From contig NIVC01003039.1 in assembly GCA_002269645.1 (NCBI GenBank), forward strand, positions 1-64,000: DNA of 64,000 nucleotides. Reading direction: 5' to 3'. Below, in pieces: positions 73-63,464 of the stretch. Position 1 is the stretch's first letter. Each line of letters begins with the position of its first letter. Under the pieces are notes generated by a model, which saw only the letters and a list, made by a program, of their open reading frames with translations, was not told where the DNA came from and did no database searches. Made by a program: the position numbers and the translations under genes. Origin of the DNA: Macrostomum lignano. Lineage: Eukaryota.

Positions 73-3000
73 CTGGAGGGTTGGCAGTCAGTTCTATGCT
101 TGAGCGATTTCCGATGCATATCGTTGCAATAAGCTTAGTGAAATAAGACAACTGGCACTCTGATCCTGGCTTCTGTCATATGACTCCATGTCCCTGTCAT
201 ATGACTCCATGTCCCTGTCATATGACTCCATGTCCCTGTCATATGACTCCATGTCCCTGTCATTTGACTCCATGTCCCTGTCATTTGACTCCATGTCCCT
301 GTCATTTGACTCCATGTCCCTGTCATATGACTCCATGTCCCTGTCATTTGACTCCATGTCCCTGTCATTTGACTCCATGTCCCTGTCATTTGACTCCATG
401 TCCCTGTCATATGACTCCATGTCCCTGTCATATGACTCCATGTCCCTGTCATTTGACTCCATGTCCCTGTCATTTGACTCCATGTCCCTGTCATATGACT
501 TCATATGATCTCCTTAATCCCTGTCACTCTCATCTCACTAATCCCTTACACTCTGATCTCCTTAATCCTTGTCACTTTCATCTCACTAATCCCTGTCACT
601 CTCATCTCACTAATCCCTGTCACATCTCATCTCACTAATCCCTGTCACACTGATCTCACTAATCCCTGTCACACTGATCTCACTAATCCCTGTCACTCTG
701 ATCTCACTAATTCCTGTCACTCTGATCTCCTTAATCCCTGTCACTCTGTTCTCACTAATCCCTGTCACTCTGATCTCACTAATCCCTGTCACTCTGATCT
801 CCCTAATCCCTGTCACTCTGATCTCACTAATCGCTGTCACACTGATCTCCCTAATCCCTGTCACACTGATCTCCCTAATCCCTGTCACTCTGATCTCACT
901 AATCCCTGTCACACTGATCTCCCTAATCCCTGTCACTCTGACTCCCTAATCCCTGTCACTCTGATCTCCTAATCCCTATCACTCTGATCTCCCTAATCCC
1001 TGCCACTCTGATCTCACTAATCCCTGTCACTCTGATCTCCCTAATCCCTGTCACACTGATCTCCCTAATCCCTGTCACTCTGATCTCCCTAATCCCTGTC
1101 ACTCTGATCTCCCTAATCCCTGTCACTCTGACTCCCTAATCCCTGTCACTCTGATCTCCCTAATCCCTGTCACTCTGACTCCCTAATCCCTGTCACTCTG
1201 ACTCCCTAATCCCTGTCACTCTGATCTCCTTAATCCCTGTCACTCTGATCTCACTAATCCCTGTCACTCTGATCTCCCTAATCCCTGTCACTCTGATCTC
1301 CCTAATCCCTGTCACTCTGATCTCACTAATCCCTGTCACTCTGATCTCACTAATCCCTGTCACTCTGATCTCCCTAATCCCTGTCACTCTGACTCCCTAA
1401 TCCCTGTCAGTCTGACTCCCTAATCCCTGTCACTCTGTACCTCTGTCCCTGTACCCGCCCTGTCACTCTGTCCCTGTACCCGCCCGAAAGACAAGAAAAG
1501 AAAGCAAGAACTCACGAATTTCAGGTACAGAAACATTCTTTGACAGCCGTTTGTGACCTTGTCTGTAGGCTCTGTAATCTTCTGTAGGCGATTTGCCAAC
1601 CTGGAATAAAAAAAAACAATTTCATATAATATCAAATAAATGAAATGAAATGAAATAACTAAATTAAACAGGACAAGAAAAGTAAATCACTGAACAACAC
1701 CAAGTAGAAAAACGAATTATAAGAATAAAAATGACTACAAGCCAACCAACGCCACACTGAAGCCGTCACCATGATAGAAAATTTATTTATCAAGTGCCAT
1801 AAAACAGGTTCCTTGCCACCTCAACACGAAAGCTCCACCTCAGCTGGAGCCTTCGCCTCCTCCGGCGAGGTTCTTCGGGTCCAGCTTCTTGAACATGCTC
1901 GCCGTGCCCTCGCCGAACGCTTCAAATCTCTTCTTGGTGTCCCCACCGAAGGCGTCGAACTTTTTCTTAGTATCCTCGTTGAACGCTGCGAATTTCTTTT
2001 TATTTTCCTCGTTGAAGGCTTCGAATTTTTTTCGATTCTCCTCGTTCGCTTCGCGGATCTTTTCGCCCGTCTCATCAGCGATTTCCTCCACTTTTTCTTG
2101 GAATTCGTGGAAGCCTTTCTTTAGCCGGCCTAAGAAGCTCGAGTCCTCGGGATCGTTGGGATCGCCTTCGGCACCTTCAACACCTTCGGCACCTTCGGCA
2201 CCTTCGGCACCTTCAGCACCTTCGGCACCTTCAGCGCCTTCAGCAGCCGCAGCTTCAGCAGCCGCAGCTTCAGCAGCCGCAGCTTCAGCGGCCGCAGCTT
2301 CAGCAGCCGCAGCTTCAGCAGCCACGGCAGCCTCCTCTTCAGGCGTTGGCAGGGGTTCACCCCTAGGGCCCCGCTGCCTACCCTCGGCCGCTTCGTCGAC
2401 TGTCCGACCAAACTCGTCCAACAGTTCCCCACCGGGTCCTCGGACAACCTGTCCGGTGGATTTGTCTTCGAGCACGCCGAACTCGTTGACCCGCCAGCCG
2501 CACTCGGAGGCCAGCAGCTGACCGTTCGCCGGGTCGCGAGGCGCGCCGCACACTGGGCGACACCGAGCGTCGAAGTAGTGACCCTGGGCGTCTCTCAACG
2601 GCGCCCCGGTTGAGGCGTCGACCAGCAGGCCGAATTCGTTCTCGCGTCTTTCCGCCGAGTCGATAACGGCTTGACTGTCGGCGTCAACAAGCTGCTGTTC
2701 GTCGGCCAGACAGACTTTCCGGCAAGCCAGCGGCCGACCTCCGGCGTCGAGCAGCTCACCGCTTGGCCCAAGCACGGGCTGCCCGGTGTCCGAGCTGGTC
2801 AGCACCCCGAGCTCGTTCGGCTCGGCCGGCGACACCAAACTGCCGTCTGGGCGGCGGACTCCGTGCACCGGACGACATTCGGAGTCGAAAAACTCGCCGG
2901 ACGGACCTCGGACTGGCCGGCCGGACTCGTCCAGCAGGACGCCATTGTCGTTGACGCCGCCAGTTGGCAGCGGCGTGCCAGTCGACGCGTTCAACAGTCG

Positions 3001-9000: not shown

Positions 9001-12000
9001 TCTTAGAAAATTTTAGAAGGCAGGTTTTCCCGAAAAAATACACTACGGAGATAGGAAGTTTGCATTTTTTCAGCACAAAAATTGTTATTGCTATTGATAG
9101 GAGGCAGATCCAGTGTTCATCTTTTGATATGTTGTGCCTTTCTTAGTGCTCTATCGATATTCATAGAGCTTTTCGTTCAGAAAATTAGGATTCTATGCTA
9201 ATTTTTTATTCTACGTACATTTTCCTGTACCTAAAAATCATAAAAATGCATGACACAACTCGAATCTTTGGTTCTATGAATCTATTTTATCATCTATGTT
9301 ACAAATATTTGTTACACAGTCAGCTGAGAATGATAAAATAGACTCATAAAACCAAAGAGCCGAGCTGTGCCATTTCAATGGCTTTTAGGCACAAGACACG
9401 TGCAAATGTAATTTTTTTACATTTTACATTTTTTACATTTTTACATGTGGAGTGGCGGGCAGTCCAGCTAGGCTGATGGAGGGTATAAACAAGAGATAAA
9501 ACAGAGGAAAGCACTAAAATCAATATTATTTACTCGTATAAAAGCGTTTATCTGATCGTGTTTAGTTTTGAGCAATTAAACTTGCAAAACAGTTAAATTA
9601 AACCTAGAAATCAAACGGCTAGTATAGCATAAGTTGACCTCATCAAGTGTTTAAATCTGCAATAATATTCCGATTTTACTACTAATGCAGGCTAAGTAGC
9701 CACCCGAGGCATTCCGCTGCTACTTTCTATAAAAAATTCATATTGACGACGAGAAAAAACTAGGGCCCCTTGGTTCTCCAGTAAGCTGAATAAACAAAAA
9801 ATGATAAATATATTTGCATAACTGCTGTAGCAAAAATGCTGATTGGAAAAGCGTAATAAAAAACTAACAAGGTAATAAGTAGCTCATACTTGAAATAAAC
9901 TAAATTATTATTGTTTATAATGCTTACTAGAAAATCGCCTTCCACGGCTTCCGGTGTCTAAATATTCAACAAGAGAGACAAAATTATGACAGAGGAGAAC
10001 AATTACCTGATGACAATAGCTAACCCAGTGCTCAATATGAACAGAGTAAAACAAATCAGTCATCCAGTGCTAGAATTAATTATTAATCCCCTAAACTCCC
10101 CAATTTGGTATCGAATCTGTGCGTTACCATTGACAGGTTTTGCTTGTCAAATGAATTAGGAAAATTAAATTACAGCCCCCGTCCAGCTTATTCAATCAAA
10201 TATCAATAACTGCAACTGGATTGGGAAATCTAGAAATTGAAGATGAATAGAATAAATTAAATTATAAATACATGGCTTGATAGTGTATAAAGCTAGTAAA
10301 TGAGTCCTAGCGATAAGAGCACAATGCGCTAGTATGGGTATTTATATACACAACTGTTATTCAATAATTCGACTCACTAGGCAGTGGCTCGACGTAGTTG
10401 GAGGGCACATAGCCTCTCTTGCCGTCCATCATCTCGCCATAGTAATAGCCATCCTGCCGTGTAAATAGAAAGAGATTATATTTATAAGCATGATTTTAGA
10501 TGTGTGCTAAACATTCGTTCCATTTGGATTTGGGGAGCTTATGTAAGCGTTTGGTTGATTTTAGGATAAACATAAGAGATCATTTAAGTCCTAATTACCT
10601 CTGGGATCTGGGACTATTTGAGTCTTAAGTACCTCTGGGATCTGGGACTATTTGAGTCTTAAGTACCTCTGGGATCTGGAACTTTTTGAATCTTAATTAC
10701 CTCTGGGATCTGGGACTATTTGAGTCTTAAGTACCTCTGGGATCTGGGACTATTTGAGTCTTGAGTACCTCTGGGATCTGGGACTATTTGAGTCTTGAGT
10801 ACCTCTGGGATCTGGGACTATTTGAGTCTTAAGTACCTCTGGGATCTGGAACTTTTTGAATCTTAATTACCTCTGGGATCTGGGACTATTTGAGTCTTGA
10901 GTACCTCTGGGATCTGGGACGATTTGAGTCTTAAGTACCTCTGGGATATGGAACTTTTTGAATCTTAATTACCTCTGGGATCTGGGACTATTTGAGTCTT
11001 AAGTATCTCTGGGATATGGAACTTTTTGAATCTTAATTACCTCTGGGATCTGGGACTATTTGAGTCTTGAGTACCTCTGGGATCTGGGACGATTTGAGTC
11101 TTAAGTACCTCTGGGATATGTGACTCTTTGAGTCTTAATTACCTCTGGGATGTGGGACTAGTTGAGTCTTAATTACCTCTGGGATATGGGACTCTTTGCG
11201 TCTTAAATACCTCTGGGATCTGAGACTATTTGAGTCTTAAATACCTCTGGGATCTGAGACTATTTGAGTCTTAAATACCTCTGGGATCTGAGACTATTTG
11301 AGTCTTAATTACCTCTGGGATCAGAGACTATTTGAGTCTTAATTAGCTCTGGGATCTGAGACTATTTGAGTCTTAATTACCTCTGGGATCTGAGACTATT
11401 TGAGTCTTAATTACCTCTGGGATCTGAGACTATTTGAGTCTTAATTACCTCTGGGATCTGAGACTATTTGAGTCTTAATTACCTCTGGGATCAGAGACTA
11501 TTTGAGTCTTAATTACCTCTGGGATCTGATATGATGAAATCTGAAATGCTTTTAAAATCTTAAATAATTCGTTTGCAGTTTGTCAACTTTGGGAACTGTT
11601 AAATAGGATTTTAAACAGCTGACGTCATCCAGCCCATCCCTTATCAATAAATTTTAAATTTGTTGGAAGGTTGCAATATTTCAACAAAAAAGAGAAAAAC
11701 TTTGCGTAAAAAATTCCGATAGCAAAGAGAACAAAACCAAAAGCAGTTTTAATGCGTTACAAAATTAGCTTCTTTTAGCTTGGCAACAAAATTTAACGAC
11801 AACATCTAACGCCAAAATTCACTGCAAATTGCCCAGTTATAAATTTTTTCAAAACCTTGTTATACAAAGCAAACTAAGAATAGAAATCTTGTTTGGTTTT
11901 TTACGGAGCGCTAAATTTTTAAGGATAAAAACTAGAAACTTTTTTTCTCGATACTACTGCCGAACGATGACGTCATAGTAGCTAGCAGTTACGCATATTT

Positions 12001-14403
12001 CGCTAATTTTTACAGTCAACTAAAGTCAACTCTAGGTCAATTTATACTACTCATACACTGTGTGTTTTCAGTAGTAGTTACGTGTGTTTTTTCAAGATTT
12101 CTTATCTACTAATGCAATAAAAATAACCAACACACACCTCGAAATAGTTGCTAAATACCAAAAGGTAGCAATAAAAACTACGAAAAGGTTAAATAGAGTC
12201 TTGTCAACCTGATCGCAGTCCCCGTGCACAAGGACATAGTCGCCCACGGAGAGCGTCAGCTCATCCTCGGGTCGGTCGTTAGGAGAGCAAGAGTACGGAT
12301 CGTAGCTGTACTTGGCCACGAATGCCCGTTTACCTGGATCCGACTGAGTTAGTTTTTTGGTCCGCAGAAATTTCGTTTTAGTTTTAGTTTAGTTTGATTG
12401 AAAACAGTACATGTGGTTTGTAATAATTATAATACCATTTTAGGGATAGTAAGTAGTCATCTGTTACATTTAAAATAATTTTATCAAAGCTAATAGTACA
12501 ATTTAAATTTAATAAACGCTGCACAGAATTTATATCAAGAAATATAATTATTTGGTTACAGAGACAATCAAGGTATAATAGATATAAGAAAGAATAAAAA
12601 TGCAAAGCACATGCACTCTCACACGAAAAAAGTAGGAAAACACGAGAGAATAGATACAAGAAGGAAGAGAGACTAGACACCTAGACACTGTGGAAGAGAT
12701 ATAGGGAGAGAGAGACTAGACTGTGAGGGAGAGAGAGGAGAGAGACTAGACACTGTGAGGGAGAGAGAGGAGAGAGACTAAACACTGTGTGGGGAGAGGG
12801 GAGAGACTAGACACTGTGAAAGAGATAGAGGGGAGAGATACTAGACACTGTGAGGGAGATAGAGGAGAGAGACTAGACACTGTGAGGGAGGGAGAGGAGA
12901 GAGATTAGACACTGTGAGAGGGAGAGAGGAGAGAGACTAGACACTGTGAGGGAGGGAGAGGAGAGAGATTAGACACTGTGAGAGGGAGAGAGGAAAGAGA
13001 CTAGACACTGTGAGGGGGGAGAGGAGAGATACTAGACACTGTGTGGGGAGAGAGGAGAGAGACTAGACACTGTGAGGGGGAGAGAAGAGAGACTAGACAC
13101 TGTGAGGGGGAGAGAAGAGAGACTAGACACTGTGAGGGAGAGAGAGTAGAGAGAATAGACACTGTGAAAGAGATAGAGAGGAGAGAGACTAGACACTGTG
13201 AGGGGAGAGAGTAGAGAGACTAGACACTGTGAAAGCGATAGAGAGGAGAGAGACTAGACACTGTGAGGGGGGAGAGGAGAGAGACTAGACACTTTGAGGG
13301 GGAGAGATAGGGAGAGAGACTAGACACTGTGAAGGGAGAGAGGAGAGAGACTAGATACAGACAGACTAAGACTCCAGTAGAGCAAGGTAATGAATGTATA
13401 CAGGACGCAAGAGATGCAAGCAGATGCGAGAGCTACACACATGGGGAAATGCAATCCGTAATCCTAATTATCCCGGTGTCTCACCAGCCTATTAACACAG
13501 CGCTCCAGGCAAACTGATGGTCATTCCCAGACTCCTGAGTTGATAAACTCATCCGGAAGCCTCAGGCTACGGGTAGAGGCACTTTTTTCATACGGGGCGT
13601 CTATCCAATAACCCAACCAACTGCGAGAGATTAAGATTTCCCACCGCTACTCAGCCTGAGAAGTGCTCATTCTAGTGAGCACACTCGAACTAATGGAACT
13701 AGCCTATATACATATATGGGAATAGAATTACTTGGGCACAGCGAGTAACCTCTTAAAGAGAAAAAACAAGACAGGGGTTTTATTGCTAGAAATCTCACTC
13801 TCTGTCTCTCTCTCTCTCTCGCCCAAGCTTTGATTGACTGCCAACCCTCCCCACAACCCACTACCAAACTCTCGCATGAGCTCGCTTCTGCCGGGCATTG
13901 CTCAACAAGGGGCTTTATATATCAACAGGATATCTGGGCAACCCCCGTCCCACTCTCTTCTCCCTTCTCATCCGCCTAGAGCCTTCCCGCACACTACTGC
14001 TCTAATCTCTAATTCCAGATTGCTCCTCCAACGATTGCTTCTCCGAAGCTTATCCCTGATCCTTATTCTCTCCCACCCACCCCGCTGTGCCCGCCTAAAC
14101 AGGCATCTGCCAGCACTGCGGAATAGCAGAGGGACACAGGGCCTTCGTCTCAGCCAATTATCTATAACTCAGAGGGGGGCGAGGAGGCGAAAGCCAGAAT
14201 GAAAACTGTGCATGATTTGGAGGATTAGCTTGGGATGAAGGAAGCTGGAGAGGAACAGGCTGCAATTCTGGGTGGCCGCAGCACGCAAAGATGAAGGGGA
14301 AGGCAGAGTGGAAGGGAAAGCGTTCTGTGCCAGCTCGTATATAATATTTATAGATAATAAAGTCATCGGTAGAGCAAAGCTGCTTAAATAGATAAATAAA
14401 TAA

Positions 14404-48100: not shown

Positions 48101-51100
48101 TTTGTTGCATAGGAAGATTCTGCATTGTGATGTATATAAGTCCCACATTTGAGTTGGCAGCTGTCTTGGAGGATGTGTGTTTAACCCAGCTGGCCAGTCC
48201 ACTCAGCTTTAGATATAAGCACATTATATAGGCATATAGGCACATAAGTAACTATACACCTCGACATAGACTAAGTTGATTATAGTTAGTTTTGCACTAC
48301 CTGCTTTTTTACTGCTTAAGGTTTAAGAATTTTCAAATAGCTTTATTAATTTTTCCACAAATCTGAATTTCAGATACCATGATCAACTTTGTGCTATTGA
48401 AAGCAAGTTGCCAATTTCTGAGAATTCAGTAAGTTTTGCACTTATTGCTTGAAATTGGCCTGTTCTGTGTGATATATTTATATTGTTCCTTTTTCAAATA
48501 TTGCAGATCCGCATTGACTTCAAGTATCATGATGCGTTTGAGAAAGAGAGCCTCTTCAGTGGAAAAAATGCTTTAAGTAAGTGCTCAAGTCTAGACTTCT
48601 AATTAGCTGGCGAGGCTATAAATTTACTCGTGCCGTTTACCCGCAGAGATCAGCTCTGGCGCATTCGAGAAGATGTGCGTCCTATTCAACATAGCTGCAC
48701 TGCAGACTCAGGTGGCCGGTCAGCAGAACTCGGACGATGCCGGTCTGCAAGCCTGCGCAAAATTTTTTCGCCAAGCCGCTGGCGCATTGGGCTACGTCAA
48801 GGACAATGCAACAGTTCTGTGCGGCCGAGAACTCAGCTCGGACATGAGCTCGGACGCCCTGTCCGCAATGATATCGCTGTGCTTGGCCCAGGCGCAGGAG
48901 ACTGTGTACAGGAAGGCGGCTAAGGATCGAATGAAATCGGCTATGGTGGCCAAGATTGCTATGTACGCTGCCGATCTGTACTCGGATACGCTGCGCTATA
49001 TGCAATTGTCAAGCGTGAAGTCTATGTGGCCGAAGGATTGGCTCAATGTTGTCGCCGCTAAACAGGTTGGTTGCTTTTGTAGAAATCGTAAAAAGTTTTT
49101 TTAAATGATTTTTTTTACTTTTTTCATAAATTCGTTTGATATTCGGCTGCAAGGCATTCTTGAAAAAATTATCTCAACTATACTACATTTTTTAAGAAGC
49201 AGATTATAAGAATCACTCCTGAACAGACTATTTGAGAATGGCCCCTGAACAGACTATTTGAGAATGGTCCCTGAACAGACTATTTGAGAATGGCCCCTGA
49301 ACAGACTATTTGAGAATGGTCCCTGAACAGACTATTTGAGAATGGCCCCTGAACAGACTATTTGAGAATGGTCCCGAACAGACTATTTGAGAATGGCCCC
49401 TGAACAGACTATTTGAGAATGGCCCCTGAACAGACTGTTTGAGAATGGCCCCTGAACAGACTGTTTGAGAATGGCCCCTGAACAGACTATTTGAGAATGG
49501 CCCCTGAACAGACTATTTGAGAATGGCCCCTGAACAGACTATTTGAGAATGGCCCCTGAACAGACTATTTGAGAATGGCCCCTGAACAGACTATTTGAGA
49601 ATGGCCCCTGAACAGACTATTTGAGAATGGCCCCTGAACAGACTATTTGAGAATGGTCCCTGAACAGACTATTTGAGAATGGTCCCTGAACAGACTGTTT
49701 GAGAATGGCCCCTGAACAGACTATTTGAGAATGGCCCCTGAACAGACTGTTTGAGAATGGTCCCTGAACAGACTATTTGAGAATGGCCCCTGAACAGACT
49801 ATTTGAGAATGGCCCCTGAACAGACTATTTGAGAATGGCCCCTGAACAGACTGTTTGAGAATGGCCCCTGAACAGACTATTTGAGAATGGCCCCTGAACA
49901 GACTGTTTGAGAATGGCCCCTGAACAGACTATTTGAGAATGGTCCCGAACAGACTATTTGAGAATGGTCCCTGAACAGACTATTTGAGAATGGCCCCTGA
50001 ACAGACTATTTGAGAATGGTCCCTGAACAGACTATTTGAGAATGGTCCCTGAACAGACTATTTGAGAATGGCCCCTGAACAGACTATTTGAGAATGGCCC
50101 CTGAACAGACTATTTGAGAATGGTCCCTGAACAGACTGTTTGAGAATGGTCCCTGAACAGACTATTTGAGAATGGCCCCTGAACAGACTATTTGAGAATG
50201 GCCCCTGAACAGACTATTTGAGAATGGCCCCTGAACAGACTATTTGAGAATGGCCCCTGAACAGACTATTTGAGAATGGCCCCTGAACAGACTATTTGAG
50301 AATGGTCCCTGAACAGACTATTTGAGAATGGCCCCTGAACAGACTATTTGAGAATGGTCCCTGAACAGACTATTTGAGAATGGCCCCTGAACAGACTATT
50401 TGAGAATGGCCCCTGAACAGACTATTTGAGAATGGTCCCTGAACAGACTATTTGAGAATGGTCCCTGAACAGACTGTTTGAGAATGGCCCCTGAACAGAC
50501 TATTTGAGAATGGCCCCTGAACAGACTATTTGAGAATGGCCCCTGAACAGACTATTTGAGAATGGTCCCTGAACAGACTGTTTGAGAATGGCCCCTGAAC
50601 AGACTATTTGAGAATGGCCCCTGAACAGACTATTTGAGAATGGCCCCTGAACAGACTATTTGAGAATGGTCCCTGAACAGACTATTTGAGAATGGTCCCG
50701 AACAGACTATTTGAGAATGGCCCCTGAACAGACTATTTGAGAATGGCCCCTGAACAGACTATTTGAGAATGGTCCCTGAACAGACTATTTGAGAATGGTC
50801 CCTGAACAGACTATTTGAGAATGGCCCCTGAACAGACTATTTGAGAATGGCCCCTGAACAGACTATTTGAGAATGGTCCCTGAACAGACTATTTGAGAAT
50901 GGCCCCTGAACAGACTATTTGAGAATGGCCCCTGAACAGACTATTTGAGAATGGCCCCTGAACAGACTATTTGAGAATGGCCCCTGAACAGACTATTTGA
51001 GAATGGCCCCTGAACAGACTATTTGAGAATGGCCCCTGAACAGACTATTTGAGAATGGCCCCTGAACAGACTATTTGAGAATGGCCCTGAACAGACTATT

Positions 51101-54100
51101 TGAGAATGGCCCTGAACAGACTATTTGAGAATGGTCCCTGAACAGACTATTTGAGAATGGCCCCTGAACAGACTATTTGAGAATGGCCCCTGAACAGACT
51201 ATTTGAGAATGGTCCCTGAACAGACTATTTGAGAATGGCCCCTGAACAGACTATTTGAGAATGGTCCCTGAACAGACTATTTGAGAATGGCCCCTGAACA
51301 GACTATTTGAGAATGGTCCCTGAACAGACTATTTGAGAATGGCCCCTGAACAGACTATTTGAGAATGGTCCCTGAACAGACTATTTGAGAATGGCCCCTG
51401 AACAGACTATTTGAGAATGGTCCCTGAACAGACTATTTGAGAATGGCCCCTGAACAGACTATTTGAGAATGGTCCCTGAACAGACTATTTGAGAATGGCC
51501 CCTGAACAGACTATTTGAGAATGGCCCCTGAACAGACTATTTGAGAATGGCCCCTGAACAGACTATTTGAGAATGGTCCCTGAACAGACTATTTGAGAAT
51601 GGCCCCTGAACAGACTATTTGAGAATGGTCCCTGAACAGACTATTTGAGAATGGCCCCTGAACAGACTATTTGAGAATGGTCCCTGAACAGACTATTTGA
51701 GAATGGCCCCTGAACAGACTATTTGAGAATGGTCCCTGAACAGACTATTTGAGAATGGCCCTGAACAGACTATTTGAGAATGGCCCCTGAACAGACTATT
51801 TGAGAATGGTCCCTGAACAGACTATTTGAGAATGGCCCCTGAACAGACTATTTGAGAATGGCCCCTGAACAGACTATTTGAGAATGGCCCCTGAACAGAC
51901 TATTTGAGAATGGCCCCTGAACAGACTATTTGAGAATGGCCCTGAACAGACTATTTGAGAATGGCCCCTGAACAGACTATTTGAGAATGGCCCCTGAACA
52001 GACTATTTGAGAATGGCCCCTGAACAGACTATTTGAGAATGGTCCCTGAACAGACTATTTGAGAATGGCCCCTGAACAGACTATTTGAGAATGGCCCTGA
52101 ACAGACTATTTGAGAATGGCCCCTGAACAGACTATTTGAGAATGGTCCCTGAACAGACTATTTGAGAATGGCCCCTGAACAGACTATTTGAGAATGGCCC
52201 CTGAACAGACTATTTGAGAATGGTCCCTGAACAGACTATTTGAGAATGGCCCCTGAACAGACTATTTGAGAATGGCCCCTGAACAGACTATTTGAGAATG
52301 GCCCTGAACAGACTATTTGAGAATGGCCCCTGAACAGACTATTTGAGAATGGCCCTGAACAGACTATTTGAGAATGGTCCCTGAACAGACTATTTGAGAA
52401 TGGCCCCTGAACAGACTATTTGAGAATGGCCCCTGAACAGACTATTTGAGAATGGCCCTGAACAGACTATTTGAGAATGGTCCCTGAACAGACTATTTGA
52501 GAATGGTCCCGAACAGACTATTTGAGAATGGCCCCTGAACAGACTATTTGAGAATGGCCCCTGAACAGACTATTTGAGAATGGTCCCTGAACAGACTATT
52601 TGAGAATGGTCCCTGAACAGACTATTTGAGAATGGCCCCTGAACAGACTATTTGAGAATGGCCCCTGAACAGACTATTTGAGAATGGTCCCTGAACAGAC
52701 TATTTGAGAATGGCCCCTGAACAGACTATTTGAGAATGGCCCCTGAACAGACTATTTGAGAATGGCCCCTGAACAGACTATTTGAGAATGGCCCTGAACA
52801 GACTATTTGAGAATGGCCCCTGAACAGACTATTTGAGAATGGCCCCTGAACAGACTATTTGAGAATGGCCCCTGAACAGACTATTTGAGAATGGCCCCTG
52901 AACAGACTATTTGAGAATGGCCCTGAACAGACTATTTGAGAATGGTCCCTGAACAGACTATTTGAGAATGGCCCCTGAACAGACTATTTGAGAATGGCCC
53001 CTGAACAGACTATTTGAGAATGGTCCCTGAACAGACTATTTGAGAATGGCCCCTGAACAGACTATTTGAGAATGGTCCCTGAACAGACTATTTGAGAATG
53101 GCCCCTGAACAGACTATTTGAGAATGGTCCCTGAACAGACTATTTGAGAATGGCCCCTGAACAGACTATTTGAGAATGGCCCCTGAACAGACTATTTGAG
53201 AATGGCCCCTGAACAGACTATTTGAGAATGGTCCCTGAACAGACTATTTGAGAATGGCCCCTGAACAGACTATTTGAGAATGGTCCCTGAACAGACTATT
53301 TGAGAATGGCCCCTGAACAGACTATTTGAGAATGGCCCCTGAACAGACTATTTGAGAATGGTCCCTGAACAGACTATTTGAGAATGGTCCCTGAACAGAC
53401 TATTTGAGAATGGCCCCTGAACAGACTATTTGAGAATGGCCCCTGAACAGACTATTTGAGAATGGCCCCTGAACAGACTATTTGAGAATGGCCCCTGAAC
53501 AGACTATTTGAGAATGGCCCCTGAACAGACTATTTGAGAATGGTCCCTGAACAGACTATTTGAGAATGGCCCCTGAACAGACTATTTGAGAATGGCCCCT
53601 GAACAGACTATTTGAGAATGGTCCCTGAACAGACTATTTGAGAATGGTCCCTGAACAGACTATTTGAGAATGGCCCCTGAACAGACTATTTGAGAATGGT
53701 CCCTGAACAGACTATTTGAGAATGGCCCCTGAACAGACTATTTGAGAATGGTCCCTGAACAGACTATTTGAGAATGGCCCCTGAACAGACTATTTGAGAA
53801 TGGTCCCTGAACAGACTATTTGAGAATGGCCCCTGAACAGACTATTTGAGAATGGTCCCTGAACAGACTATTTGAGAATGGCCCCTGAACAGACTATTTG
53901 AGAATGGCCCCTGAACAGACTATTTGAGAATGGTCCCTGAACAGACTATTTGAGAATGGCCCTGAACAGACTATTTGAGAATGGTCCCTGAACAGACTAT
54001 TTGAGAATGGCCCCTGAACAGACTATTTGAGAATGGCCCTGAACAGACTATTTGAGAATGGCCCCTGAACAGACTATTTGAGAATGGTCCCTGAACAGAC

Positions 54101-57100
54101 TATTTGAGAATGGCCCCTGAACAGACTATTTGAGAATGGTCCCTGAACAGACTATTTGAGAATGGCCCCTGAACAGACTATTTGAGAATGGTCCCTGAAC
54201 AGACTATTTGAGAATGGCCCCTGAACAGACTATTTGAGAATGGCCCTGAACAGACTATTTGAGAATGGCCCTGAACAGACTATTTGAGAATGGCCCCTGA
54301 ACAGACTATTTGAGAATGGCCCCTGAACAGACTATTTGAGAATGGTCCCTGAACAGACTATTTGAGAATGGCCCCTGAACAGACTATTTGAGAATGGTCC
54401 CTGAACAGACTATTTGAGAATGGCCCTGAACAGACTATTTGAGAATGGTCCCTGAACAGACTATTTGAGAATGGCCCCTGAACAGACTATTTGAGAATGG
54501 CCCCTGAACAGACTATTTGAGAATGGCCCCTGAACAGACTATTTGAGAATGGTCCCTGAACAGACTATTTGAGAATGGCCCCTGAACAGACTATTTGAGA
54601 ATGGTCCCTGAACAGACTATTTGAGAATGGCCCCTGAACAGACTATTTGAGAATGGCCCCTGAACAGACTATTTGAGAATGGCCCCTGAACAGACTATTT
54701 GAGAATGGCCCTGAACAGACTATTTGAGAATGGCCCCTGAACAGACTATTTGAGAATGGCCCTGAACAGACTATTTGAGAATGGCCCCTGAACAGACTAT
54801 TTGAGAATGGTCCCTGAACAGACTATTTGAGAATGGCCCTGAACAGACTATTTGAGAATGGCCCTGAACAGACTATTTGAGAATGGCCCTGAACAGACTA
54901 TTTGAGAATGGTCCCTGAACAGACTATTTGAGAATGGCCCCTGAACAGACTATTTGAGAATGGCCCCTGAACAGACTATTTGAGAATGGCCCTGAACAGA
55001 CTATTTGAGAATGGCCCTGAACAGACTATTTGAGAATGGTCCCTGAACAGACTATTTGAGAATGGCCCCTGAACAGACTATTTGAGAATGGCCCTGAACA
55101 GACTATTTGAGAATGGTCCCTGAACAGACTATTTGAGAATGGCCCTGAACAGACTATTTGAGAATGGCCCCTGAACAGACTATTTGAGAATGGTCCCTGA
55201 ACAGACTATTTGAGAATGGTCCCTGAACAGACTATTTGAGAATGGTCCCTGAACAGACTATTTGAGAATGGTCCCTGAACAGACTATTTGAGAATGGTCC
55301 CTGAACAGACTATTTGAGAATGGCCCTGAACAGACTATTTGAGAATGGCCCCTGAACAGACTATTTGAGAATGGCCCCTGAACAGACTATTTGAGAATGG
55401 TCCCTGAACAGACTATTTGAGAATGGCCCCTGAACAGACTATTTGAGAATGGTCCCTGAACAGACTATTTGAGAATGGTCCCTGAACAGACTATTTGAGA
55501 ATGGCCCTGAACAGACTATTTGAGAATGGCCCCTGAACAGACTATTTGAGAATGGTCCCTGAACAGACTATTTGAGAATGGCCCCTGAACAGACTATTTG
55601 AGAATGGCCCCTGAACAGACTATTTGAGAATGGCCCTGAACAGACTATTTGAGAATGGCCCTGAACAGACTATTTGAGAATGGCCCCTGAACAGACTATT
55701 TGAGAATGGTCCCTGAACAGACTGTTTGAGAATGGCCCCTGAACAGACTATTTGAGAATGGCCCCTGAACAGACTATTTGAGAATGGTCCCTGAACAGAC
55801 TATTTGAGAATGGTCCCTGAACAGACTATTTGAGAATGGCCCCTGAACAGACTATTTGAGAATGGTCCCTGAACAGACTATTTGAGAATGGCCCCTGAAC
55901 AGACTATTTGAGAATGGTCCCTGAACAGACTATTTGAGAATGGCCCCTGAACAGACTATTTGAGAATGGTCCCTGAACAGACTATTTGAGAATGGCCCCT
56001 GAACAGACTATTTGAGAATGGCCCCTGAACAGACTATTTGAGAATGGCCCCTGAACAGACTATTTGAGAATGGCCCCTGAACAGACTATTTGAGAATGGC
56101 CCCTGAACAGACTATTTGAGAATGGCCCCTGAACAGACTATTTGAGAATGGCCCCTGAACAGACTATTTGAGAATGGTCCCTGAACAGACTATTTGAGAA
56201 TGGCCCCTGAACAGACTATTTGAGAATGGCCCCTGAACAGACTATTTGAGAATGGTCCCTGAACAGACTATTTGAGAATGGTCCCTGAACAGACTGTTTG
56301 AGAATGGCCCCTGAACAGACTATTTGAGAATGGTCCCTGAACAGACTATTTGAGAATGGCCCCTGAACAGACTATTTGAGAATGGTCCCTGAACAGACTG
56401 TTTGAGAATGGCCCCTGAACAGACTATTTGAGAATGGTCCCTGAACAGACTATTTGAGAATGGCCCCTGAACAGACTATTTGAGAATGGTCCCTGAACAG
56501 ACTATTTGAGAATGGTCCCTGAACAGACTATTTGAGAATGGCCCTGAACAGACTATTTGAGAATGGTCCCTGAACAGACTATTTGAGAATGGCCCCTGAA
56601 CAGACTATTTGAGAATGGCCCTGAACAGACTATTTGAGAATGGTCCCTGAACAGACTATTTGAGAATGGCCCCTGAACAGACTATTTGAGAATGGTCCCT
56701 GAACAGACTATTTGAGAATGGCCCTGAACAGACTATTTGAGAATGGTCCCTGAACAGACTATTTGAGAATGGTCCCTGAACAGACTATTTGAGAATGGCC
56801 CCTGAACAGACTATTTGAGAATGGTCCCTGAACAGACTATTTGAGAATGGTCCCTGAACAGACTATTTGAGAATGGCCCCTGAACAGACTATTTGAGAAT
56901 GGTCCCTGAACAGACTATTTGAGAATGGTCCCTGAACAGACTATTTGAGAATGGTCCCGAACAGACTATTTGAGAATGGCCCCTGAACAGACTATTTGAG
57001 AATGGTCCCTGAACAGACTATTTGAGAATGGTCCCTGAACAGACTATTTGAGAATGTCCCTGAACAGACTATTTGAGAATGTCCCTGAACAGACTATTTG

Positions 57101-60100
57101 AGAATGGCCCTGAACAGACTATTTGAGAATGGCCCCTGAACAGACTATTTGAGAATGGCCCTGAACAGACTATTTAGAATGGCCCTGAACAGACTATTTG
57201 AGAATGGTCCCTGAACAGACTATTTGAGAATGGCCCCTGAACAGACTATTTGAGAATGGCCCCTGAACAGACTATTTGAGAATGGCCCCTGAACAGACTA
57301 TTTGAGAATGGTCCCTGAACAGACTATTTAGAATGGCCCCTGAACAGACTATTTGAGAATGGCCCCTGAACAGACTATTTGAGAATGGTCCCTGAACAGA
57401 CTATTTGAGAATGGTCCCTGAACAGACTATTTGAGAATGGCCCTGAACAGACTATTTGAGAATGGCCCCTGAACAGACTATTTGAGAATGGCCCCTGAAC
57501 AGACTATTTGAGAATGGTCCCTGAACAGACTGTTTGAGAATGGTCCCTGAACAGACTGTTTGAGAATGGCCCCTGAACAGACTATTTAAGAATGGCCCCT
57601 GAACAGACTATTTGAGAATGGTCCCTGAACAGACTGTTTGAGAATGGTCCCTGAACAGACTATTTGAGAATGGTCCCTGAACAGACTATTTGAGAATGGC
57701 CCCTGAACAGACTATTTGAGAATGGCCCCTGAACAGACTGTTTGAGAATGGCCCCTGAACAGACTATTTGAGAATGGCCCCTGAACAGACTATTTGAGAA
57801 TGGCCCCTGAACAGACTATTTGAGAATGGCCCTGAACAGACTATTTGAGAATGGCCCCTGAACAGACTATTTGAGAATGGTCCCTGAACAGACTATTTGA
57901 GAATGGCCCCTGAACAGACTGTTTGAGAATGGCCCCTGAACAGACTATTTGAGAATGGTCCCTGAACAGACTATTTGAGAATGGCCCCTGAACAGACTAT
58001 TTGAGAATGGTCCCTGAACAGACTATTTGAGAATGGCCCCTGAACAGACTATTTGAGAATGGCCCCTGAACAGACTATTTGAGAATGGCCCCTGAACAGA
58101 CTATTTGAGAATGGCCCCTGAACAGACTATTTGAGAATGGTCCCTGAACAGACTATTTGAGAATGGTCCCTGAACAGACTATTTGAGAATGGTCCCTGAA
58201 CAGACTATTTGAGAATGGTCCCTGAACAGACTATTTGAGAATGGTCCCTGAACAGACTATTTGAGAATGGCCCCTGAACAGACTATTTGAGAATGGCCCC
58301 TGAACAGACTATTTAAGAATTCTGAGAATGGTCCCTGAACAGACTATTTAAGAATTCTGAGAATGGTCCCTGAACAGACTATTTAAGAATTCTGAGAATG
58401 GTCCCTGAACAGACTATTTGAGAATTCTGAGAATGGTCCCTGAACTGCGATAAAAGCTTTCTAATACCTTAAGCTGCATCTGTTAATCTCTCGTCCCCTT
58501 AGGCTGGCTTCCACGCGCTGGCCGAATTCTACCAAGCCGAGACCTGCGGCGAGGCCAGGAAATTCGGCGAGCAAATTGCCCGTCTGCAGCACTCTGACCA
58601 GCTGTTCAAAGAGTCGGACAAGCGGTCCGGCAGCTCCACCCAGATGCCGTTCAAAGCCGAGTGGACTAAGGCTAAGAAAGCTTTGGAGACTGTTGAGAAA
58701 GATAATAATACTATCTATCACGAGCAGGTAAGCTCACGAATGCTTCATAACCTCACGTAAAATCTAGAATAGGACGCTGACCCTCCCAGATCCTGAGTTG
58801 CTGGGCCAGCCTCCCAGATCCTGAGTTGCTGGGCCAGCCTCCCAGATCCTGAGTTGCTGGGCCAGCCTCCCAGATCCTCAGTTGCTGGGCCAGCCTCCCA
58901 GATCCTCAGTTGCTGGGCCAGCCTCCCAGATCCTCAGTTGCTGAGCCAGCCTCCCAGATCGTCAGTTGCTGGGCCAGCCTCCAAGATCCTCAGCTGCTGG
59001 GCCAGCCTCGGAGATCCTCAGTTGCTGGGCCAGCCTCCCAGATTCTCAGTTGCTGGGCCAGCCTCCCAGATCCTCAGTTGCTGGGCCAGCCTCCCAGATC
59101 CTCAGTTGCTGGACCAGCCTCCCAGATCCTCAGTTGCTGAGCCAGCCTCCCAGATCCTCAGTTGCTGAGCCAGCCTCCCAGATCCTCAGTTGCTAGGCCA
59201 TTTCGATCCGAATTCGCTAACCTGCTCCAGGTGCCACCGGTGAACTCGCTCTCGGCCATAGACAAGGCCGCCATCGCCAAGGCCATCCCCATGGCCTACC
59301 CAATGTCCGAAGGCTTTCGCGACAGCTTCGACAGGCTGGTGCCCATGCACATCCATCAGTCCTTGCTGAACTTCGAAGCTTGCCGTAATGACGCCTGCCA
59401 GAAGGAGCTGGGCCGCCTGCGCGAGGCCACCAGCCTGATGCAGGGCGTGCTAACCTCGCTGAACCTGCCGATGTCGCTAGAAGACTCTGGCTCGGCCAGC
59501 GTGCCGCCTTCGCTGCTTGACAAGGCCCGCGATCTGGTTGACAAAGGCGGCTACGAGAAGTTGCGCGAATTGTCCTCTGAGAATCCCGAGCTGCACAAGC
59601 GCAATCGCGAAATACTGGACGAAGCCCTGCGCTTGCTAGACGAGGAGCAGGAAGCCGATAATAAGCTGCGGGAACAGTTCAAGGAGAAATGGCAGCGAAC
59701 TCCGTCTGAACGGCTTAACGATAAACTGCGCAGCGAGGCTATGAACTTCAAGTGAGAATTTTTTCTCTTGTGAGATTCCTGCGATGCTTTTTTAGTAAAG
59801 ACTCGTAACTTTTTTCGTCTGATGCTTTTCCGTCAGAGGTGTGAGATTTCCTAAGAGCTACTATCAATTATGAGATTTCCTATGATATGCTATCAATTGT
59901 GAGATTTCCATGATGCTATTCAGTCTGAGGCGTGAGATTTCCCATGAGATGCTATTCAGTCTGAGGCTTGAGATTTCCCATAAGATGCTATTCAGTCTGA
60001 GGCGTGAGATTTACCATGAGATGCTATTCAGTCTGAGGCGTGAGATTTCCCATGAGATGCTATTCAGTCTGAGGCGTGAGATTTACCATGAGATGCTATT

Positions 60101-63100
60101 CAGTCTGAGGCGTGAGATTTCCCATGAGATGCTATTCAGTCTGAGGCGTGAGATTTCCCATGAGATGCTATTCAGTCTGAGGCGTGAGTTTTCCCATGAG
60201 ATGCTATTCAGTCTGAGGAATGAGATTTCCCATGAGATGCTATTCAGTCTGAGGAATGAGATTTCCCGTGGGATGCAACTGTCTGAGAGCGTGAGTCTGA
60301 GAGCGTGAGATTTTCCATGAGATTCTATTCAGTCTGTGGCGTGAGATTTCCCATGAGATTCTATTCAGTCTGAGAGCGTGAGATTTCCCATGAGCTGCAA
60401 CTCAGTCTGAGAGCGTGAGATTTCCCGTGAGATGCTATTCAGTCTGAGGCGTGAGATTTCCCATGAGATGCTATTCAGTCTGAGGCGTGAGATTTCCCAT
60501 GAGATGCTATTCAGTCTGAGGCGTGAGTTTTCCCATGAGATGCTATTCAGTCTGAGGAATGAGATTTCCCATGAGATGCTATTCAGTCTGAGGAATGAGA
60601 TTTCCCATGAGATGCTATTCAGTCTGAGGAATGAGATTTCCCATGAGATGCTATTCAGTCTGAGGAATGAGATTTCCCATGAGATGCTATTCAGTCTGAG
60701 GAATGAGATTTCCCATGGGATGCAACTGTCTGAGAGCGTGAGTCTGAGAGCGTGAGATTTTCCATGAGATTCTATTCAGTCTGTGGCGTGAGATTTCCCA
60801 TGAGATTCTATTCAGTCTGAGAGCGTGAGATTTCCCATGAGCTGCAACTCAGTCTGAGAGCGTGAGATTTCCCGTGAGATGCTATTCAGTCTGAGGCGTG
60901 AGATTTCCCATGAGATGCTATTCAGTCTGAGGCGTGAGATTTCCCATGAGATGCTATTCAGTCTGAGAGCGTGAGATTTCCCATGAGATCCTTCAGTCTG
61001 AGGAGTTGTATGCCTAAAACTGTCTAAATTTAAAAATACCAATTTTGTTGCTGCAATGCTACTAATATAGTAAACTAGGACAGTAGCTTAAAAGCGCATG
61101 TCCCGCTAAAAAACACACCCGCCAGGCAAATGCTGGAGAACGCGTCAAGCGCCGATCGCACTGTGCAACAGAAAATCGCCGACAATTCCGAGGGTCTCAC
61201 CGTACTGAGCGGCGGCGAATCCAAGATCAAAGCCGCCCTACCGACAGCCGGCGGCCAAGCTGCCAGCGGCGGCTCCGGCGGCGAAGCTTTGAAAGCTGAC
61301 CTGCGCAAACTCTGCCAACAGGCCGAGTCGCTGAAAGGGGAGCGAACCGGACTGGAGAAGCAGCTGCAGGACGCCATGGCCAGCCAGCCGGACGGTCTGG
61401 CCACAGAATTAAGCAACGCCATGTCCGATAGCAGCGGCCAGGCCGACGTGTCCTCGCTTGTCAACGACAAAGTCAACGAGTTGCTCAGGCCGTTGAGGCA
61501 GAAAGTTGACGAACAGCTGCAACAGCAGGAGAGTCTTCTGGCTGAGGTGAGAGATGCGCGACCGGGACTTGTAGGGTTTGTTGCTTTTGAGCGCGAATTG
61601 CAAGTTGAATGCCTTAATTTGGGAAACCTGGGTGTGCTGAAAATTCCTAGTCTTTTATTCACTTAACTCCTAGCTCTGGATATCCTAGCATCAGTCTAAA
61701 TACCCTAGCACCACTCTAGACACGCTAGCACCACACAAGACACCCTAGTACCACTCTAGACACCCTAGCACCACTCTAGACACCCTAGTACCACTCTAGA
61801 CACCCTAGTACCACTCTAGACACCCTAGTACCACTCTAGACACCCTAGCATCACTCTAGACACCCTAGCACCACTCTAGACACCCTAGTACCACTCTAGA
61901 CACCCTAGTACCACTCTAGACACCCTAGTACCACTCTAGACACCCTAGCATCACTCTAGACACCCTAGCACCACTCTAGACACCCTAGTACCACTCTAGA
62001 CACCCTAGTACCACTCTAGACACCCTAGTACCACTCTAGACACCCTAGCATCACTCTAGACACCCTAGCACCACTCTAGACACCCTAGTACCACTCTAGA
62101 CACCCTAGTACCACTCTAGACACCCTAGTACCACTCTAGACACGCTAGCACCACACAAGACACCCTAGTACCACTCTAGACACCCTAGCACCACTCTAGA
62201 CACCCTAGTACCACTCTAGACACCCTAGTACCACTCTAGACACCCTAGTACCACTCTAGACACCCTAGCATCACTCTAGACACCCTAGTACCACTCTAGA
62301 CACCCTAGTACCACTCTAGACACCCTAGTACCACTCTAGACACCCTAGCATCACTCTAGACACCCTAGCACCACTCTAGACACCCTAGTACCACTCTAGA
62401 CACCCTAGTACCACTCTAGACACCCTAGTACCACTCTAGACACCCTAGCATCACTCTAGACACTCTAGCACCACTCTAGATACCTTAGTACCACTCTAGA
62501 CACCCTAGTACCACTCTAGACACCCTAGCACCACTCTAGATACCCTAGTACCACTCTAGACACCCTAGTACCACTCTAGACACGCTAGAATCACTATAGA
62601 CACCCTAGCACCACTCTAGATACCCTAGTACCACTCTAGACACCCTAGTACCACTCTAGACACCCTAGCACCACTCTAGACACCCCAGCATCACTCTAGA
62701 CACCCTAGCACCACTCTAGATACCCTAGCACCACTCTAGACACCCTAGCACCACTCTAGATACCCTAGCATCACTCTAGACACCCTAGCACCACTCTAGA
62801 TACCCTAGTACCACTCTAGACACTCTAGTACCACTCTAGACACCCTAGAACCACTCTAGACACCCTAGTACCACTCTAGACACCCTAGTACCACTCTAGA
62901 CACCCTAGTACCACTCTAGACACCCTAGCATCACTCTAGACACCCTAGCATCAGTCTAAACGTACCCGCTGCTCCCGCCAGGTGCAATCAAAGAACACGG
63001 AGTGGAGCGGCGGCTCGCAGAGCACAGCAGGCAGCCGGCAGGCCTGGCTCACAAAGCTCGGCAAAGCCTACGACGCGTTCATTGAAGTGCTTGGCAATTT

Positions 63101-63302
63101 GAAAGAAGGCCAGAAGTTCTACTCCGACCTGACCGAAGTGCTGCTAAAGCACCAGAGTCGAGTCAGCGATTTCTGTTTCGCTCGTAAAACAGAAAAAGAC
63201 GAATTGATGCGCGATTTGCAGTCGGCCATCGCCAGGCAGCAGCCAGCTCAGTCCGCGCCGTCTGCCCCGGCCTTTCATGCCACCACCGCCGGCACTGGAC
63301 AG
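44917..63302 (+). CDS. PDCD6IP: ALIX / programmed cell death 6-interacting protein (Bro1 + V domain) gene model, 3'-incomplete
   Basis: Exons 44917-45119, 48374-48428, 48507-48576, 48647-49065, 58503-58727, 59231-59751, 61126-61546, 62982-63302 splice in frame (2235 nt, 745 codons). Near-identical ALIX segments: NREILDEALRLLDEEQEADNKLREQFKEKWQRTPS, LNLPMSLED, NLKEGQKFYSDLTE, FARKTEKDELMRDLQSAIAR. Confidence 0.95.
45480..47160. repeat. Diverged ~440-bp tandem duplication plus short inverted arrays in ALIX intron 1
   Basis: 45977.. AGTCCGGATCATGCTAGGTGTATGCC is similar to 46830.. AGTCTAGATCATGTTAGGTGCATGCC. CATTTTGCCCATAAACC-type units at 45518-45640 recur inverted at 45945-45970 and 46755-46805. 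Confidence 0.6.
46331..46733. mobile_element. 403-bp MITE, hAT-type (8-bp TSD)
   Basis: 17-bp TIRs TAGAGGTCGGACGGGAT / ATCCCGTCCAACCTCTA (1 mismatch); perfect 8-bp direct repeat ATACTATA at 46323-46330 and 46734-46741; no ORF with transposase similarity. Confidence 0.88.
48374..48428 (+). CDS. PDCD6IP: ALIX exon 2
   Basis: YHDQLCAIESKLPISENS; TTTCAG / GTAAGT; phase 2-0. Confidence 0.92.
48507..48576 (+). CDS. PDCD6IP: ALIX exon 3 (Phe105-loop region)
   Basis: IRIDFKYHDAFEKESLFSGKNAL; TTGCAG / GTAAGT; phase 0-1. Confidence 0.9.
48647..49065 (+). CDS. PDCD6IP: ALIX exon 4 (Bro1 core)
   Basis: FEKMCVLFNIAALQTQVA...LAQAQETVYRKA...AAKQ; phase 1-0. Confidence 0.95.
49218..58444 (+). repeat. ~9.2-kb satellite, 25-bp monomer CTGAACAGACTATTTGAGAATGG(C/T)CC, about 370 copies, in ALIX intron 4
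   Basis: Direct inspection; highly homogeneous, with C/T, 1-bp deletion and A/G variants. Confidence 0.98.
58503..58727 (+). CDS. PDCD6IP: ALIX exon 5 (Bro1 C-terminal part)
   Basis: AGFHALAEFYQA...KFGEQIARLQH...EKDNNTIYHEQ; CCCCTTAG / GTAAGC; phase 0-0. Confidence 0.93.
58780..59195 (+). repeat. 28-bp minisatellite GGGCCAGCCTCCCAGATCCTCAGTTGCT
   Basis: About 15 copies in ALIX intron 5. Confidence 0.95.
59231..59751 (+). CDS. PDCD6IP: ALIX exon 6 (Bro1 end, V domain start)
   Basis: VPPVNSLSAIDKAAIAK...RSEAMNF; donor AA|GTGAGA; phase 0-2. Confidence 0.95.
59850..61000 (+). repeat. 36-bp minisatellite GAGATGCTATTCAGTCTGAGGCGTGAGATTTCCCAT
   Basis: About 30 copies in ALIX intron 6. Confidence 0.95.
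61126..61546 (+). CDS. PDCD6IP: ALIX exon 7 (V domain)
   Basis: QMLENASSADRTVQQK...QQQESLLAE; donor GAG|GTGAGA; phase 2-0. Confidence 0.9.
61682..62960 (+). repeat. 20-bp minisatellite GACACCCTAG(T/C)ACCACTCTA
   Basis: About 63 copies in ALIX intron 7. Confidence 0.96.
62982..63302 (+). CDS. PDCD6IP: ALIX exon 8 (V domain end, start of Pro-rich tail)
   Basis: VQSKNTEW...AYDAFIEVLGNLKEGQKFYSDLTEVL...SAPSAPAFH; donor CAG|GTGAAA; phase 0-0. Confidence 0.93.
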
Positions 63303-63464
63303 GTGAAAAATTATGTGCCTGTGCTTTTTTAGATTGTAAATCGTACAGGTAGATTCTCACAGGGTGTACAGCGGGCTTGACTTTTATCGTCAGACATGTA
63401 CATTCTGCTTTAGATATTGGCTTTACAGGCACGAAATCGTGTACAAAATTGAAAAGCCCATATG

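Follow-up and report, generated by a model that had tools for sequence, protein, structure and literature searches.

The window analysed here, 64,000 nucleotides of DNA (positions 1 to 64,000 of contig NIVC01003039.1, GenBank assembly GCA_002269645.1), carries on its minus strand a gene for RIM-binding protein (RIM-BP), and within that gene a large exon whose 3' end encodes a module of 11-residue repeats. The module is predicted to form one continuous amphipathic helix of 85 residues (FLGRL...FKKL, 2136–1882), as indicated by AlphaFold2 (AF2) modelling, by its hydrophobic moment (µH) and by 57% identity to a second RIM-BP, A0A1I8HA44. We propose, with a probability of roughly 0.45, that the module is a conserved amphipathic helix of about 85 residues that lies between the third FN3 domain (FN3-3) and the second SH3 domain (SH3-II) of RIM-BP and binds a lipid surface.

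The 11-residue repeat and its predicted helix

Seven 11-residue units are encoded at 2121–1891 on the minus strand, as read from the translation of 1840–2166, and 16 more residues separate them from the stop. Identity between residues of the repeat is 0.50 at a lag of 11, 0.36 at a lag of 22 and 0.25 at a lag of 33, with the remaining lags at or below 0.22, and at the DNA level Tandem Repeats Finder (TRF) reports a 33-bp period at 1963–2046. A preliminary description of this DNA had listed about seven such units with hydrophobic residues at fixed positions, and the same translation together with the lag-11 identity upholds that account. It left unsaid that the module is on the minus strand, and in its details it needs correction: the first two units are more degenerate and have Val or Ile where later units have Phe, and the predicted helix begins nine residues earlier, at FLGRL (2136), and ends at FKKL (1882). 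Adjacent units keep their residues and vary their codons, such that units 5 and 6 have 7 of 11 residues in common and five synonymous codon differences. Because the units have diverged synonymously, the repeat is old and constrained as protein, and is not a recent product of DNA slippage.

We then calculated the hydrophobic moment and an 11/3 helical wheel, both of which had been suggested as checks on the helix. Over 77 residues the moment is maximal at 98–99°, or 3.64–3.67 residues per turn (z 4.3–5.8 on three hydrophobicity scales), a value reached by 0–1 of 5000 shuffles; hydrophobic power is 0.341 at a period of 3.667 and 0.109 at the heptad period of 3.5, and the module does not have the 3.5-residue hydrophobic periodicity of a canonical heptad coiled coil. 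On the wheel, the apolar sector is made up of positions 3 (Phe), 7 (Thr/Asn), 0 (Phe, or Val/Ile in the first units) and 4 (Asn/Gly), bordered by Lys at positions 8 and 10, and the back face is Glu, Asp and Ala, with Glu/Asp at positions 1, 5 and 6. This is a class-A pattern, as in the exchangeable apolipoproteins, and the 11/3 periodicity means that the apolar stripe runs straight along the helix axis.

Given a two-sequence alignment, AF2 returned a single unbroken helix at residues 21–104 of the 118 modelled (84–85 residues; predicted local distance difference test score [pLDDT] 81–90, predicted template modelling score [pTM] 0.33), in agreement with the helix predicted earlier for the 11-mer segment. 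If helical, the module would be about 12.5 nm long; there is only one Pro in 92 residues, at the very end of the module region, and twelve Phe are aligned along one face. The model does not fold back on itself and leaves these twelve Phe exposed on one face of the monomer, so that a covering partner surface would be needed. When compared by Foldseek with the Protein Data Bank (PDB), the helix model matched nothing, which is unsurprising for a lone helix.

The composition of the module is strongly charged and rich in Phe, with hydrophobic, aromatic and charged fractions of 0.32, 0.14 (Phe 14%) and 0.46 respectively and a mean hydrophobicity of about 0. The hydrophobic moment is about 0.38–0.42 over the whole module (0.38 at 98°) and 0.23–0.59 in 18-residue windows, with the highest values in the first, more hydrophobic turns. 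Net charge is +1 in the window sequence and –1 to –2 in A0A1I8HA44, depending on the boundaries chosen. A HeliQuest-type discriminant D of at least 0.68 ('possible') is found mainly in the Lys-rich second half, and values above 1.34 in three windows only, at residues 37 and 69. Residues of opposite charge are paired at i to i+3/4 in 27 instances against 14 for like charge, a salt-bridge excess with z of 2.2 in the window and 1.4 in A0A1I8HA44.

We compared these properties with the known families of 11-mer helices. Pfam gives only sub-threshold matches on the module, to Apolipoprotein A1/A4/E (PF01442; 19.9 bits against a cut-off of 90, E 6.7e-4) and to PhaP_Bmeg, and PDB searches return only ApoA-I, ApoA-IV and ApoE, plus a weak match to KMP-11; the two-sequence profile reaches ApoA-IV at E 1.2e-5, without a single significant stretch. 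There is no Pfam match on the module to Synuclein (PF01387), Perilipin (PF03036) or LEA_4 (PF02987), the synuclein negative extending to E 10, with the reservation that few matches above about 0.1 survive the HMMER filters, and the KTKEGV motif does not occur in the module sequence. The module has the wheel of an apolipoprotein (basic interface, acidic centre of the polar face and 11-residue period) and fails to reach the corresponding score, and it lacks Pro-punctuated 22-mer helices, having one terminal Pro and a lag-22 identity (0.36) lower than that at lag 11 (0.50). A synuclein-type 3-11 periodicity over about 90 residues is present, with its maximum at 98–99°.

The composition of the module lies inside the spread of values that Copic et al. 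2018 (Table 1 of PMC5889406) give for helices proven to bind lipid. There, µH and the hydrophobic, aromatic and charged fractions are 0.48/0.32/0.10/0.49 for CCT-alpha domain M, 0.39/0.40/0.065/0.35 for ApoA-I and 0.30/0.47/0.02/0.24 for alpha-synuclein, and the Phe fraction of Plin3 and Plin4 is 0.002–0.01; the module is nearest to CCT-alpha domain M and ApoA-I, and away from alpha-synuclein and Plin3/4. CCT-alpha domain M is similar in its hydrophobic (0.32), aromatic (0.10–0.14) and charged (0.46–0.49) fractions, its high moment, its 11-mers and its mixture of acidic and basic residues, and the stretch EFQEKVEE may resemble the domain M repeat, but there is no detectable sequence relationship and domain M serves to auto-inhibit an enzyme. 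Apolipoproteins A-I, A-IV and E share the 11-residue period, Lys at the polar/apolar boundary and the acidic centre of the polar face, and are the sole significant profile similarities of the module, whereas the module has neither Pro punctuation nor a 22-mer super-period, builds its apolar face from Phe and not Leu, and resides in a cytosolic scaffold and not a secreted host; the similarity is most likely convergent. Alpha-synuclein is also presynaptic, with a 3-11 helix over about 85–90 residues, interface Lys, a small or hydroxylated residue midway across the apolar face and an acidic flank, but the module lacks KTKEGV, differs in its aromatic (0.14 and 0.02), charged (0.46 and 0.24) and hydrophobic (0.32 and 0.47) fractions, has a net charge near zero and not positive, and has its acidic flank on the N-terminal side. 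The perilipin 11-mer region and group 3 LEA proteins have the 11-mer periodicity and are likewise predicted to pass from unfolded to helical, but they are without bulky aromatics and weakly amphipathic, whereas the module is Phe-based with a higher moment.

The synuclein-, LEA- and perilipin-like chemistry initially suggested for this segment is therefore not what we find, given 14% Phe, 46% charged residues, a net charge near zero, no KTKEGV and a sub-threshold apolipoprotein profile as the sole Pfam match of these families. By these measures the analogy with apolipoproteins or CCT appears stronger than that with synuclein, LEA proteins or perilipins, and the module would seem to resemble a 3-11 class-A amphipathic helix while being a member of none of these families. 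We also considered whether the F-[DE]-A-F units could be FFAT (EFFDAxE), FxDxF or [DE]nFxxFxxxR appendage-binding motifs, but their spacings and key positions appear not to fit.

Conservation in a second RIM-BP

Scanned exhaustively with HMMER, a set of 1.84 billion representative proteins gave six matches, among which the sole true homologue of the module is UniRef A0A1I8HA44 of Macrostomum lignano. Pfam identifies this protein as a RIM-BP, from its Ig_RIMBP2, fn3 and SH3 domains (SH3_2 at 788–847), and like the window gene it has a first SH3 domain (SH3-I) followed by three FN3/Ig_RIMBP2 domains. Its residues 499–586 align with window positions 2163–1867 at 57% identity, with one 11-mer fewer in A0A1I8HA44, whereas the FN3 domains of the two proteins are 45–47% identical, below the value for the module. 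By wheel position, identity at the four apolar-face positions is 6/7, 6/7, 4/7 and 7/7, and at the centre of the polar face 3/7.

The place of the module is common to both proteins, after FN3-3 and an acidic, Ala-rich low-complexity stretch. The acidic stretch and lead-in of the window (2137–2340, 65 residues), directly upstream of the helix, contain 20 Asp/Glu and no Lys/Arg, and the acidic Ala/Thr/Glu stretch before the module in A0A1I8HA44 contains 18 Asp/Glu and no Lys/Arg; it appears to be the property of the acidic flank that is conserved, and not its sequence. The two proteins differ in what surrounds the module, since in A0A1I8HA44 it is internal and is followed by a Ser/Arg/Gln-rich linker, SH3-II and the third SH3 domain (SH3-III), and A0A1I8HA44 has no 565-residue repeat domain such as precedes the module in the window.

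The FN3-3 domain of the window is 58% identical to that of a caridean shrimp, its best match, and 45.5% identical to that of A0A1I8HA44. Being closer to the shrimp than to A0A1I8HA44, it suggests that the two module-bearing RIM-BPs come from species that are not closely related. With tblastn and the two-sequence hidden Markov model at maximum sensitivity on six-frame translations, we found no module in the complete FN3-3 to SH3-II interval of a Halocaridina rubra locus (JAXCGZ010013332.1), nor in the same interval of three further animal RIM-BP contigs. The module thus appears, on the loci compared, to be lineage-restricted or repeatedly lost, having been seen in two lineages so far.

Word-indexed homology searches with the whole exon or with its repeat domain alone yielded no relative among the best 8000 candidates, and in a metagenome scan the two-sequence alignment of the module gave 600 pattern matches and no relative. 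Three environmental proteins among the HMMER matches (P0039, P0040 and P0042) contain long 11-mer arrays with F-x-x-F-G-x-D-T-x-K as in the module, for example about 25 copies of KAFKEFGQDTD; they match the apolipoprotein profile also, P0039 doing so above the Pfam Apolipoprotein cut-off. Their likeness to the module is probably one of periodic composition, convergent and not due to common descent.

The host exon and the RIM-BP gene

The minus-strand translation of 4086–1843 is a single uninterrupted frame. Within it we place a large exon of 2.2 kb at 4035–1840, comprising 732 codons including the stop, with the module at its 3' end; its acceptor is ccccttatgtcag/GCC, with 4035 as first base and in phase 0. 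The chance of meeting no stop over 732 codons is about 2e-9 at this base composition, and the GC content at the three codon positions is 0.73/0.52/0.69. The exon has no ATG in frame ahead of the tail and must therefore be joined by splicing to one further upstream.

Most of the exon (4035–2341, 565 residues) consists of about 12 degenerate repeats of about 47 residues (NEFGVL.D..TG.P.RG..GEFF...GRPV.G.R.PDG.L) with regularly placed Cys. This domain has no Pfam match, no homologue found except a weak match to the GRLID repeats of an amoebozoan protein, and no counterpart in A0A1I8HA44, and AF2 without an alignment gave it a pLDDT of 40, an unusable model. It is followed by the acidic Ala/Glu/Gly low-complexity stretch (2340–2167), which includes coding microsatellites (AEAAA)n and (AEG)n with TRF periods of 9, 15 and 18, and by a 10-residue lead-in (2166–2137) with a D-P..D motif common to the alignment with A0A1I8HA44. 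We looked for an internal acceptor that would give a module-only exon as in A0A1I8HA44, but the AGs near 2340–2420 are all in phase 2 and have no polypyrimidine tract.

Beyond the helix the frame continues for 13 C-terminal residues (1881–1843), in which DP is a conserved helix stop and similarity to A0A1I8HA44 ends after KKLDP..L, and then closes with TGA at 1842–1840. The sequence from the last 11-mer to this TGA is free of GT dinucleotides, which rules out a donor bypassing the stop. An AATAAA polyadenylation-signal consensus is found 53 nt past the stop (1787–1782), although this is weak evidence in an AT-rich flank.

The exons of RIM-BP lie upstream, in order and on the same strand. Matches with A0A1I8HA44 in tblastn place SH3-I in two exons (12328–12212 and 10453–10370, together spanning 10370–12328), and the matched parts of the FN3-1 and FN3-2 exons at 8307–7981 and 6996–6808; the FN3-3 exon (6518–6075) is identified by Ig_RIMBP2 matches, including PF25523-bearing proteins, and by tblastn at 6485–6123, and ends in a phase-0 donor, GAT/gtaagt. 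A candidate exon for a Gln/Ser/Arg-rich linker follows at 5346–4756, with a phase-0 acceptor and a phase-0 donor (AGG/gtaacg). The phase-0 acceptor of the large exon is compatible with the donors at both 6075 and 4756. Past its stop by 240 nt there is a well-formed candidate next RIM-BP exon at 1600–1516, ttttttttattccag/GTTGGC...GAAATTC/gtgagt, with a phase-0 acceptor and a weak resemblance to the linker of A0A1I8HA44, and this would be the exon used on skipping of the large exon. Further on, an open stretch at 85–1 on the same strand runs off the start of the window. Its match to the start of SH3-II (E 0.4–1) we treated as chance; 1600–1516 and 85–1, whose similarity to the linker of A0A1I8HA44 is faint, probably continue the canonical RIM-BP linker toward SH3-II. 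The SH3-II and SH3-III domains themselves would be encoded past position 1 of the window.

The large exon therefore falls within the RIM-BP gene and shares its orientation, with the FN3-3 exon on one side and the later candidate exons on the other. This agrees with the earlier assignment of the 11-mer segment to RIM-BP, for which the SH3-I and three FN3 exons upstream and the presence of the module at the same position in A0A1I8HA44 both speak. The simplest reading is that the large exon is an alternative last exon, which would define a predicted isoform. When it is included, RIM-BP would keep its N-terminal region, SH3-I and the FN3 domains, and would end in the helix in place of SH3-II and SH3-III. 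The description of the module as a C-terminal tail thus agrees with the reading frame of the window, which the exon closes with a TGA that no GT donor could bypass and that AATAAA follows 53 nt on, but not with A0A1I8HA44, where the module is internal; the further proposal that it acts instead of SH3-RIM contacts fails as a general property, since in A0A1I8HA44 the module coexists with SH3-II and SH3-III. As a whole, the preliminary interpretation is supported in part, with vesicle tethering as a hypothesis. A literature search on splice variants of RIM-BP found nothing relevant.

The introns are packed with minisatellites of 19–71-bp units (173–1437, 49218–58320 and many others), including 21-mer and 24-mer arrays between RIM-BP exons. 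The array at 49218–58320 spans 9.1 kb with 352 copies of a 26-mer and lies inside the neighbouring gene, an ALIX/PDCD6IP-like gene with BRO1 and ALIX V-domain exons on the plus strand (48673–63332). The exons of the ALIX-like gene start some 12 kb past what may be the first coding exon of RIM-BP (36443–35718, minus strand), and the two genes appear to be head-to-head.

A lipid surface, a protein partner or a spacer

If the module is a lipid-surface helix, the segment would be poorly structured or unstable alone and would fold as a 3-11 helix flat on the lipid surface, with the Phe pairs at positions 0 and 3 entering packing defects while the Lys residues snorkel. Such a helix would provide a direct, reversible and probably curvature- or packing-sensitive contact of RIM-BP with a vesicle or the presynaptic membrane. 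The upstream acidic stretch might tune the binding; according to a passage of PMC6164224 that cites Chong et al. 2014, acidic flanks modulate the curvature sensitivity of amphipathic helices. We favour a lipid as the covering surface because the 11/3 stripe is straight and bordered by Lys, the back is acidic, the composition is like that of lipid-binding helices and the acidic flank is conserved. Our analysis shows the repeat, its periodicity and helix propensity, its conservation, its place in the RIM-BP locus and the end of the frame at this exon of the window; that a short isoform is expressed, that the helix binds lipid and which membrane it would meet are all things that we infer.

Several observations weigh against a lipid surface. 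Bioinformatic prediction is no proof of amphipathic helix formation (PMC6164224), and long helices predicted by AF2 do not discriminate among lipid-binding helices, coiled coils and single alpha-helices (SAHs). Mean hydrophobicity and net charge are both near zero, the latter implying weak electrostatic attraction to the anionic lipids of synaptic vesicles, and the middle of the helix (23 residues) carries a charge of –4 to –6. Hydrophobic residues occupy just two of the four apolar-face positions. High identity between the two RIM-BPs reaches the polar positions N4 and T7 and a 12-residue block, and such identity at polar positions would be expected where a protein binds a specific partner, more than where a helix adsorbs to lipid in general. 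The internal location of the module in A0A1I8HA44 also means that being a tail is not its defining context.

These same features lead to the main alternative, that the helix binds protein, a serious rival although we consider it somewhat unlikely. The Phe stripe would then serve either for self-association of RIM-BP, in a hendecad Phe-zipper or bundle, or for docking on a partner or on another RIM-BP domain, and the module would add valency to the active-zone scaffold without contacting lipid. An identity of 57%, above that of the FN3 domains and with polar positions included, would suit such an interface, as would twelve Phe on one face that need burial and a near-zero net charge and acidic centre that are unfavourable on anionic membranes. 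The known contacts of the multivalent RIM-BP are, moreover, all protein–protein, and the Drosophila structure-function study PMC7337501 makes no mention of the module or of lipid or amphipathic features, the words 'lipid' and 'amphipathic' being absent from it. However, a hendecad would have Asn/Gly at core position e and Thr/Asn at core position h, a poor coiled-coil core; there is no heptad signal, AF2 shows no fold-back, and Lys at the edges together with an acidic back is the arrangement of a classic lipid-surface (class-A) helix. We give considerably less probability to a third reading, in which the module acts as a SAH-like charged spacer, helical or disordered, that has no specific surface for binding and serves to set the distance between the FN3 array and the part that follows. 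Its 46% charged residues, the 27 opposite-charge against 14 like-charge i to i+3/4 pairs and the long isolated helix in AF2 are consistent with this, but the salt-bridge enrichment is mild (z 2.2 in the window and 1.4 in A0A1I8HA44), and a SAH gives no reason for a coherent Phe stripe (z 4–6) or for preferential conservation of the apolar face.

We also weighed whether the exon lies outside RIM-BP mRNAs altogether, either because it closes a separate gene nested on this strand or because it is unexpressed or decaying and its stop is a lesion. Its occurrence in no protein of the libraries covered by the word-indexed searches, the reading of A0A1I8HA44 through the module where the window frame stops, and the NEFGVL repeat domain without a counterpart in A0A1I8HA44 all point in this direction. 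Set against them are the 732 open codons (P 2e-9), the synonymous divergence between units that reflects protein-level constraint, the lack of an in-frame ATG and hence the requirement for an upstream exon, the fit of the phase-0 acceptor to the phase-0 donors of both upstream RIM-BP exons, and the homologous module in-frame at the same relative position in the RIM-BP A0A1I8HA44, and we regard this explanation as very improbable.

Under the lipid-surface reading, a bolder generalisation, which we hold to be doubtful, is that some invertebrate RIM-BPs have a built-in 3-11 helix that senses curvature or packing, and that in the gene of the window an alternative last exon swaps SH3-II and SH3-III for a lipid anchor. 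RIM-BP is a core organiser of neurotransmitter release sites, in which the stretch from FN3-3 to SH3-II is treated as a linker. Its described contacts are through the SH3 domains, which bind RIM, Ca channels and Aplip1, and through the N-terminal region, which binds BRP and Unc13A (PMC7337501, PMC4536467). A full-text literature search for RIM-binding protein together with amphipathic helix returned unrelated reviews only, and we found no description of such an element in RIM-BP; the 11-mer amphipathic helix is a known type of element and RIM-BP a new host for it.

Between the two RIM-BPs compared, the supposed linker contains a module that is better conserved than the FN3 domains and has the chemistry of a lipid-surface helix. 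If it binds membrane, it would constitute a new kind of link between scaffold and membrane, by which a core release-site scaffold would touch the vesicle or plasma membrane directly, as a functional analogue, resident at the active zone, of synuclein or apolipoprotein-type helices. Synucleins are known only from vertebrates, and the module would then be an independent 11-mer solution at the synapse in animals that lack them. If the large exon is indeed an alternative terminal exon, RIM-BP would occur naturally in an isoform that is not coupled to RIM or to Ca channels.

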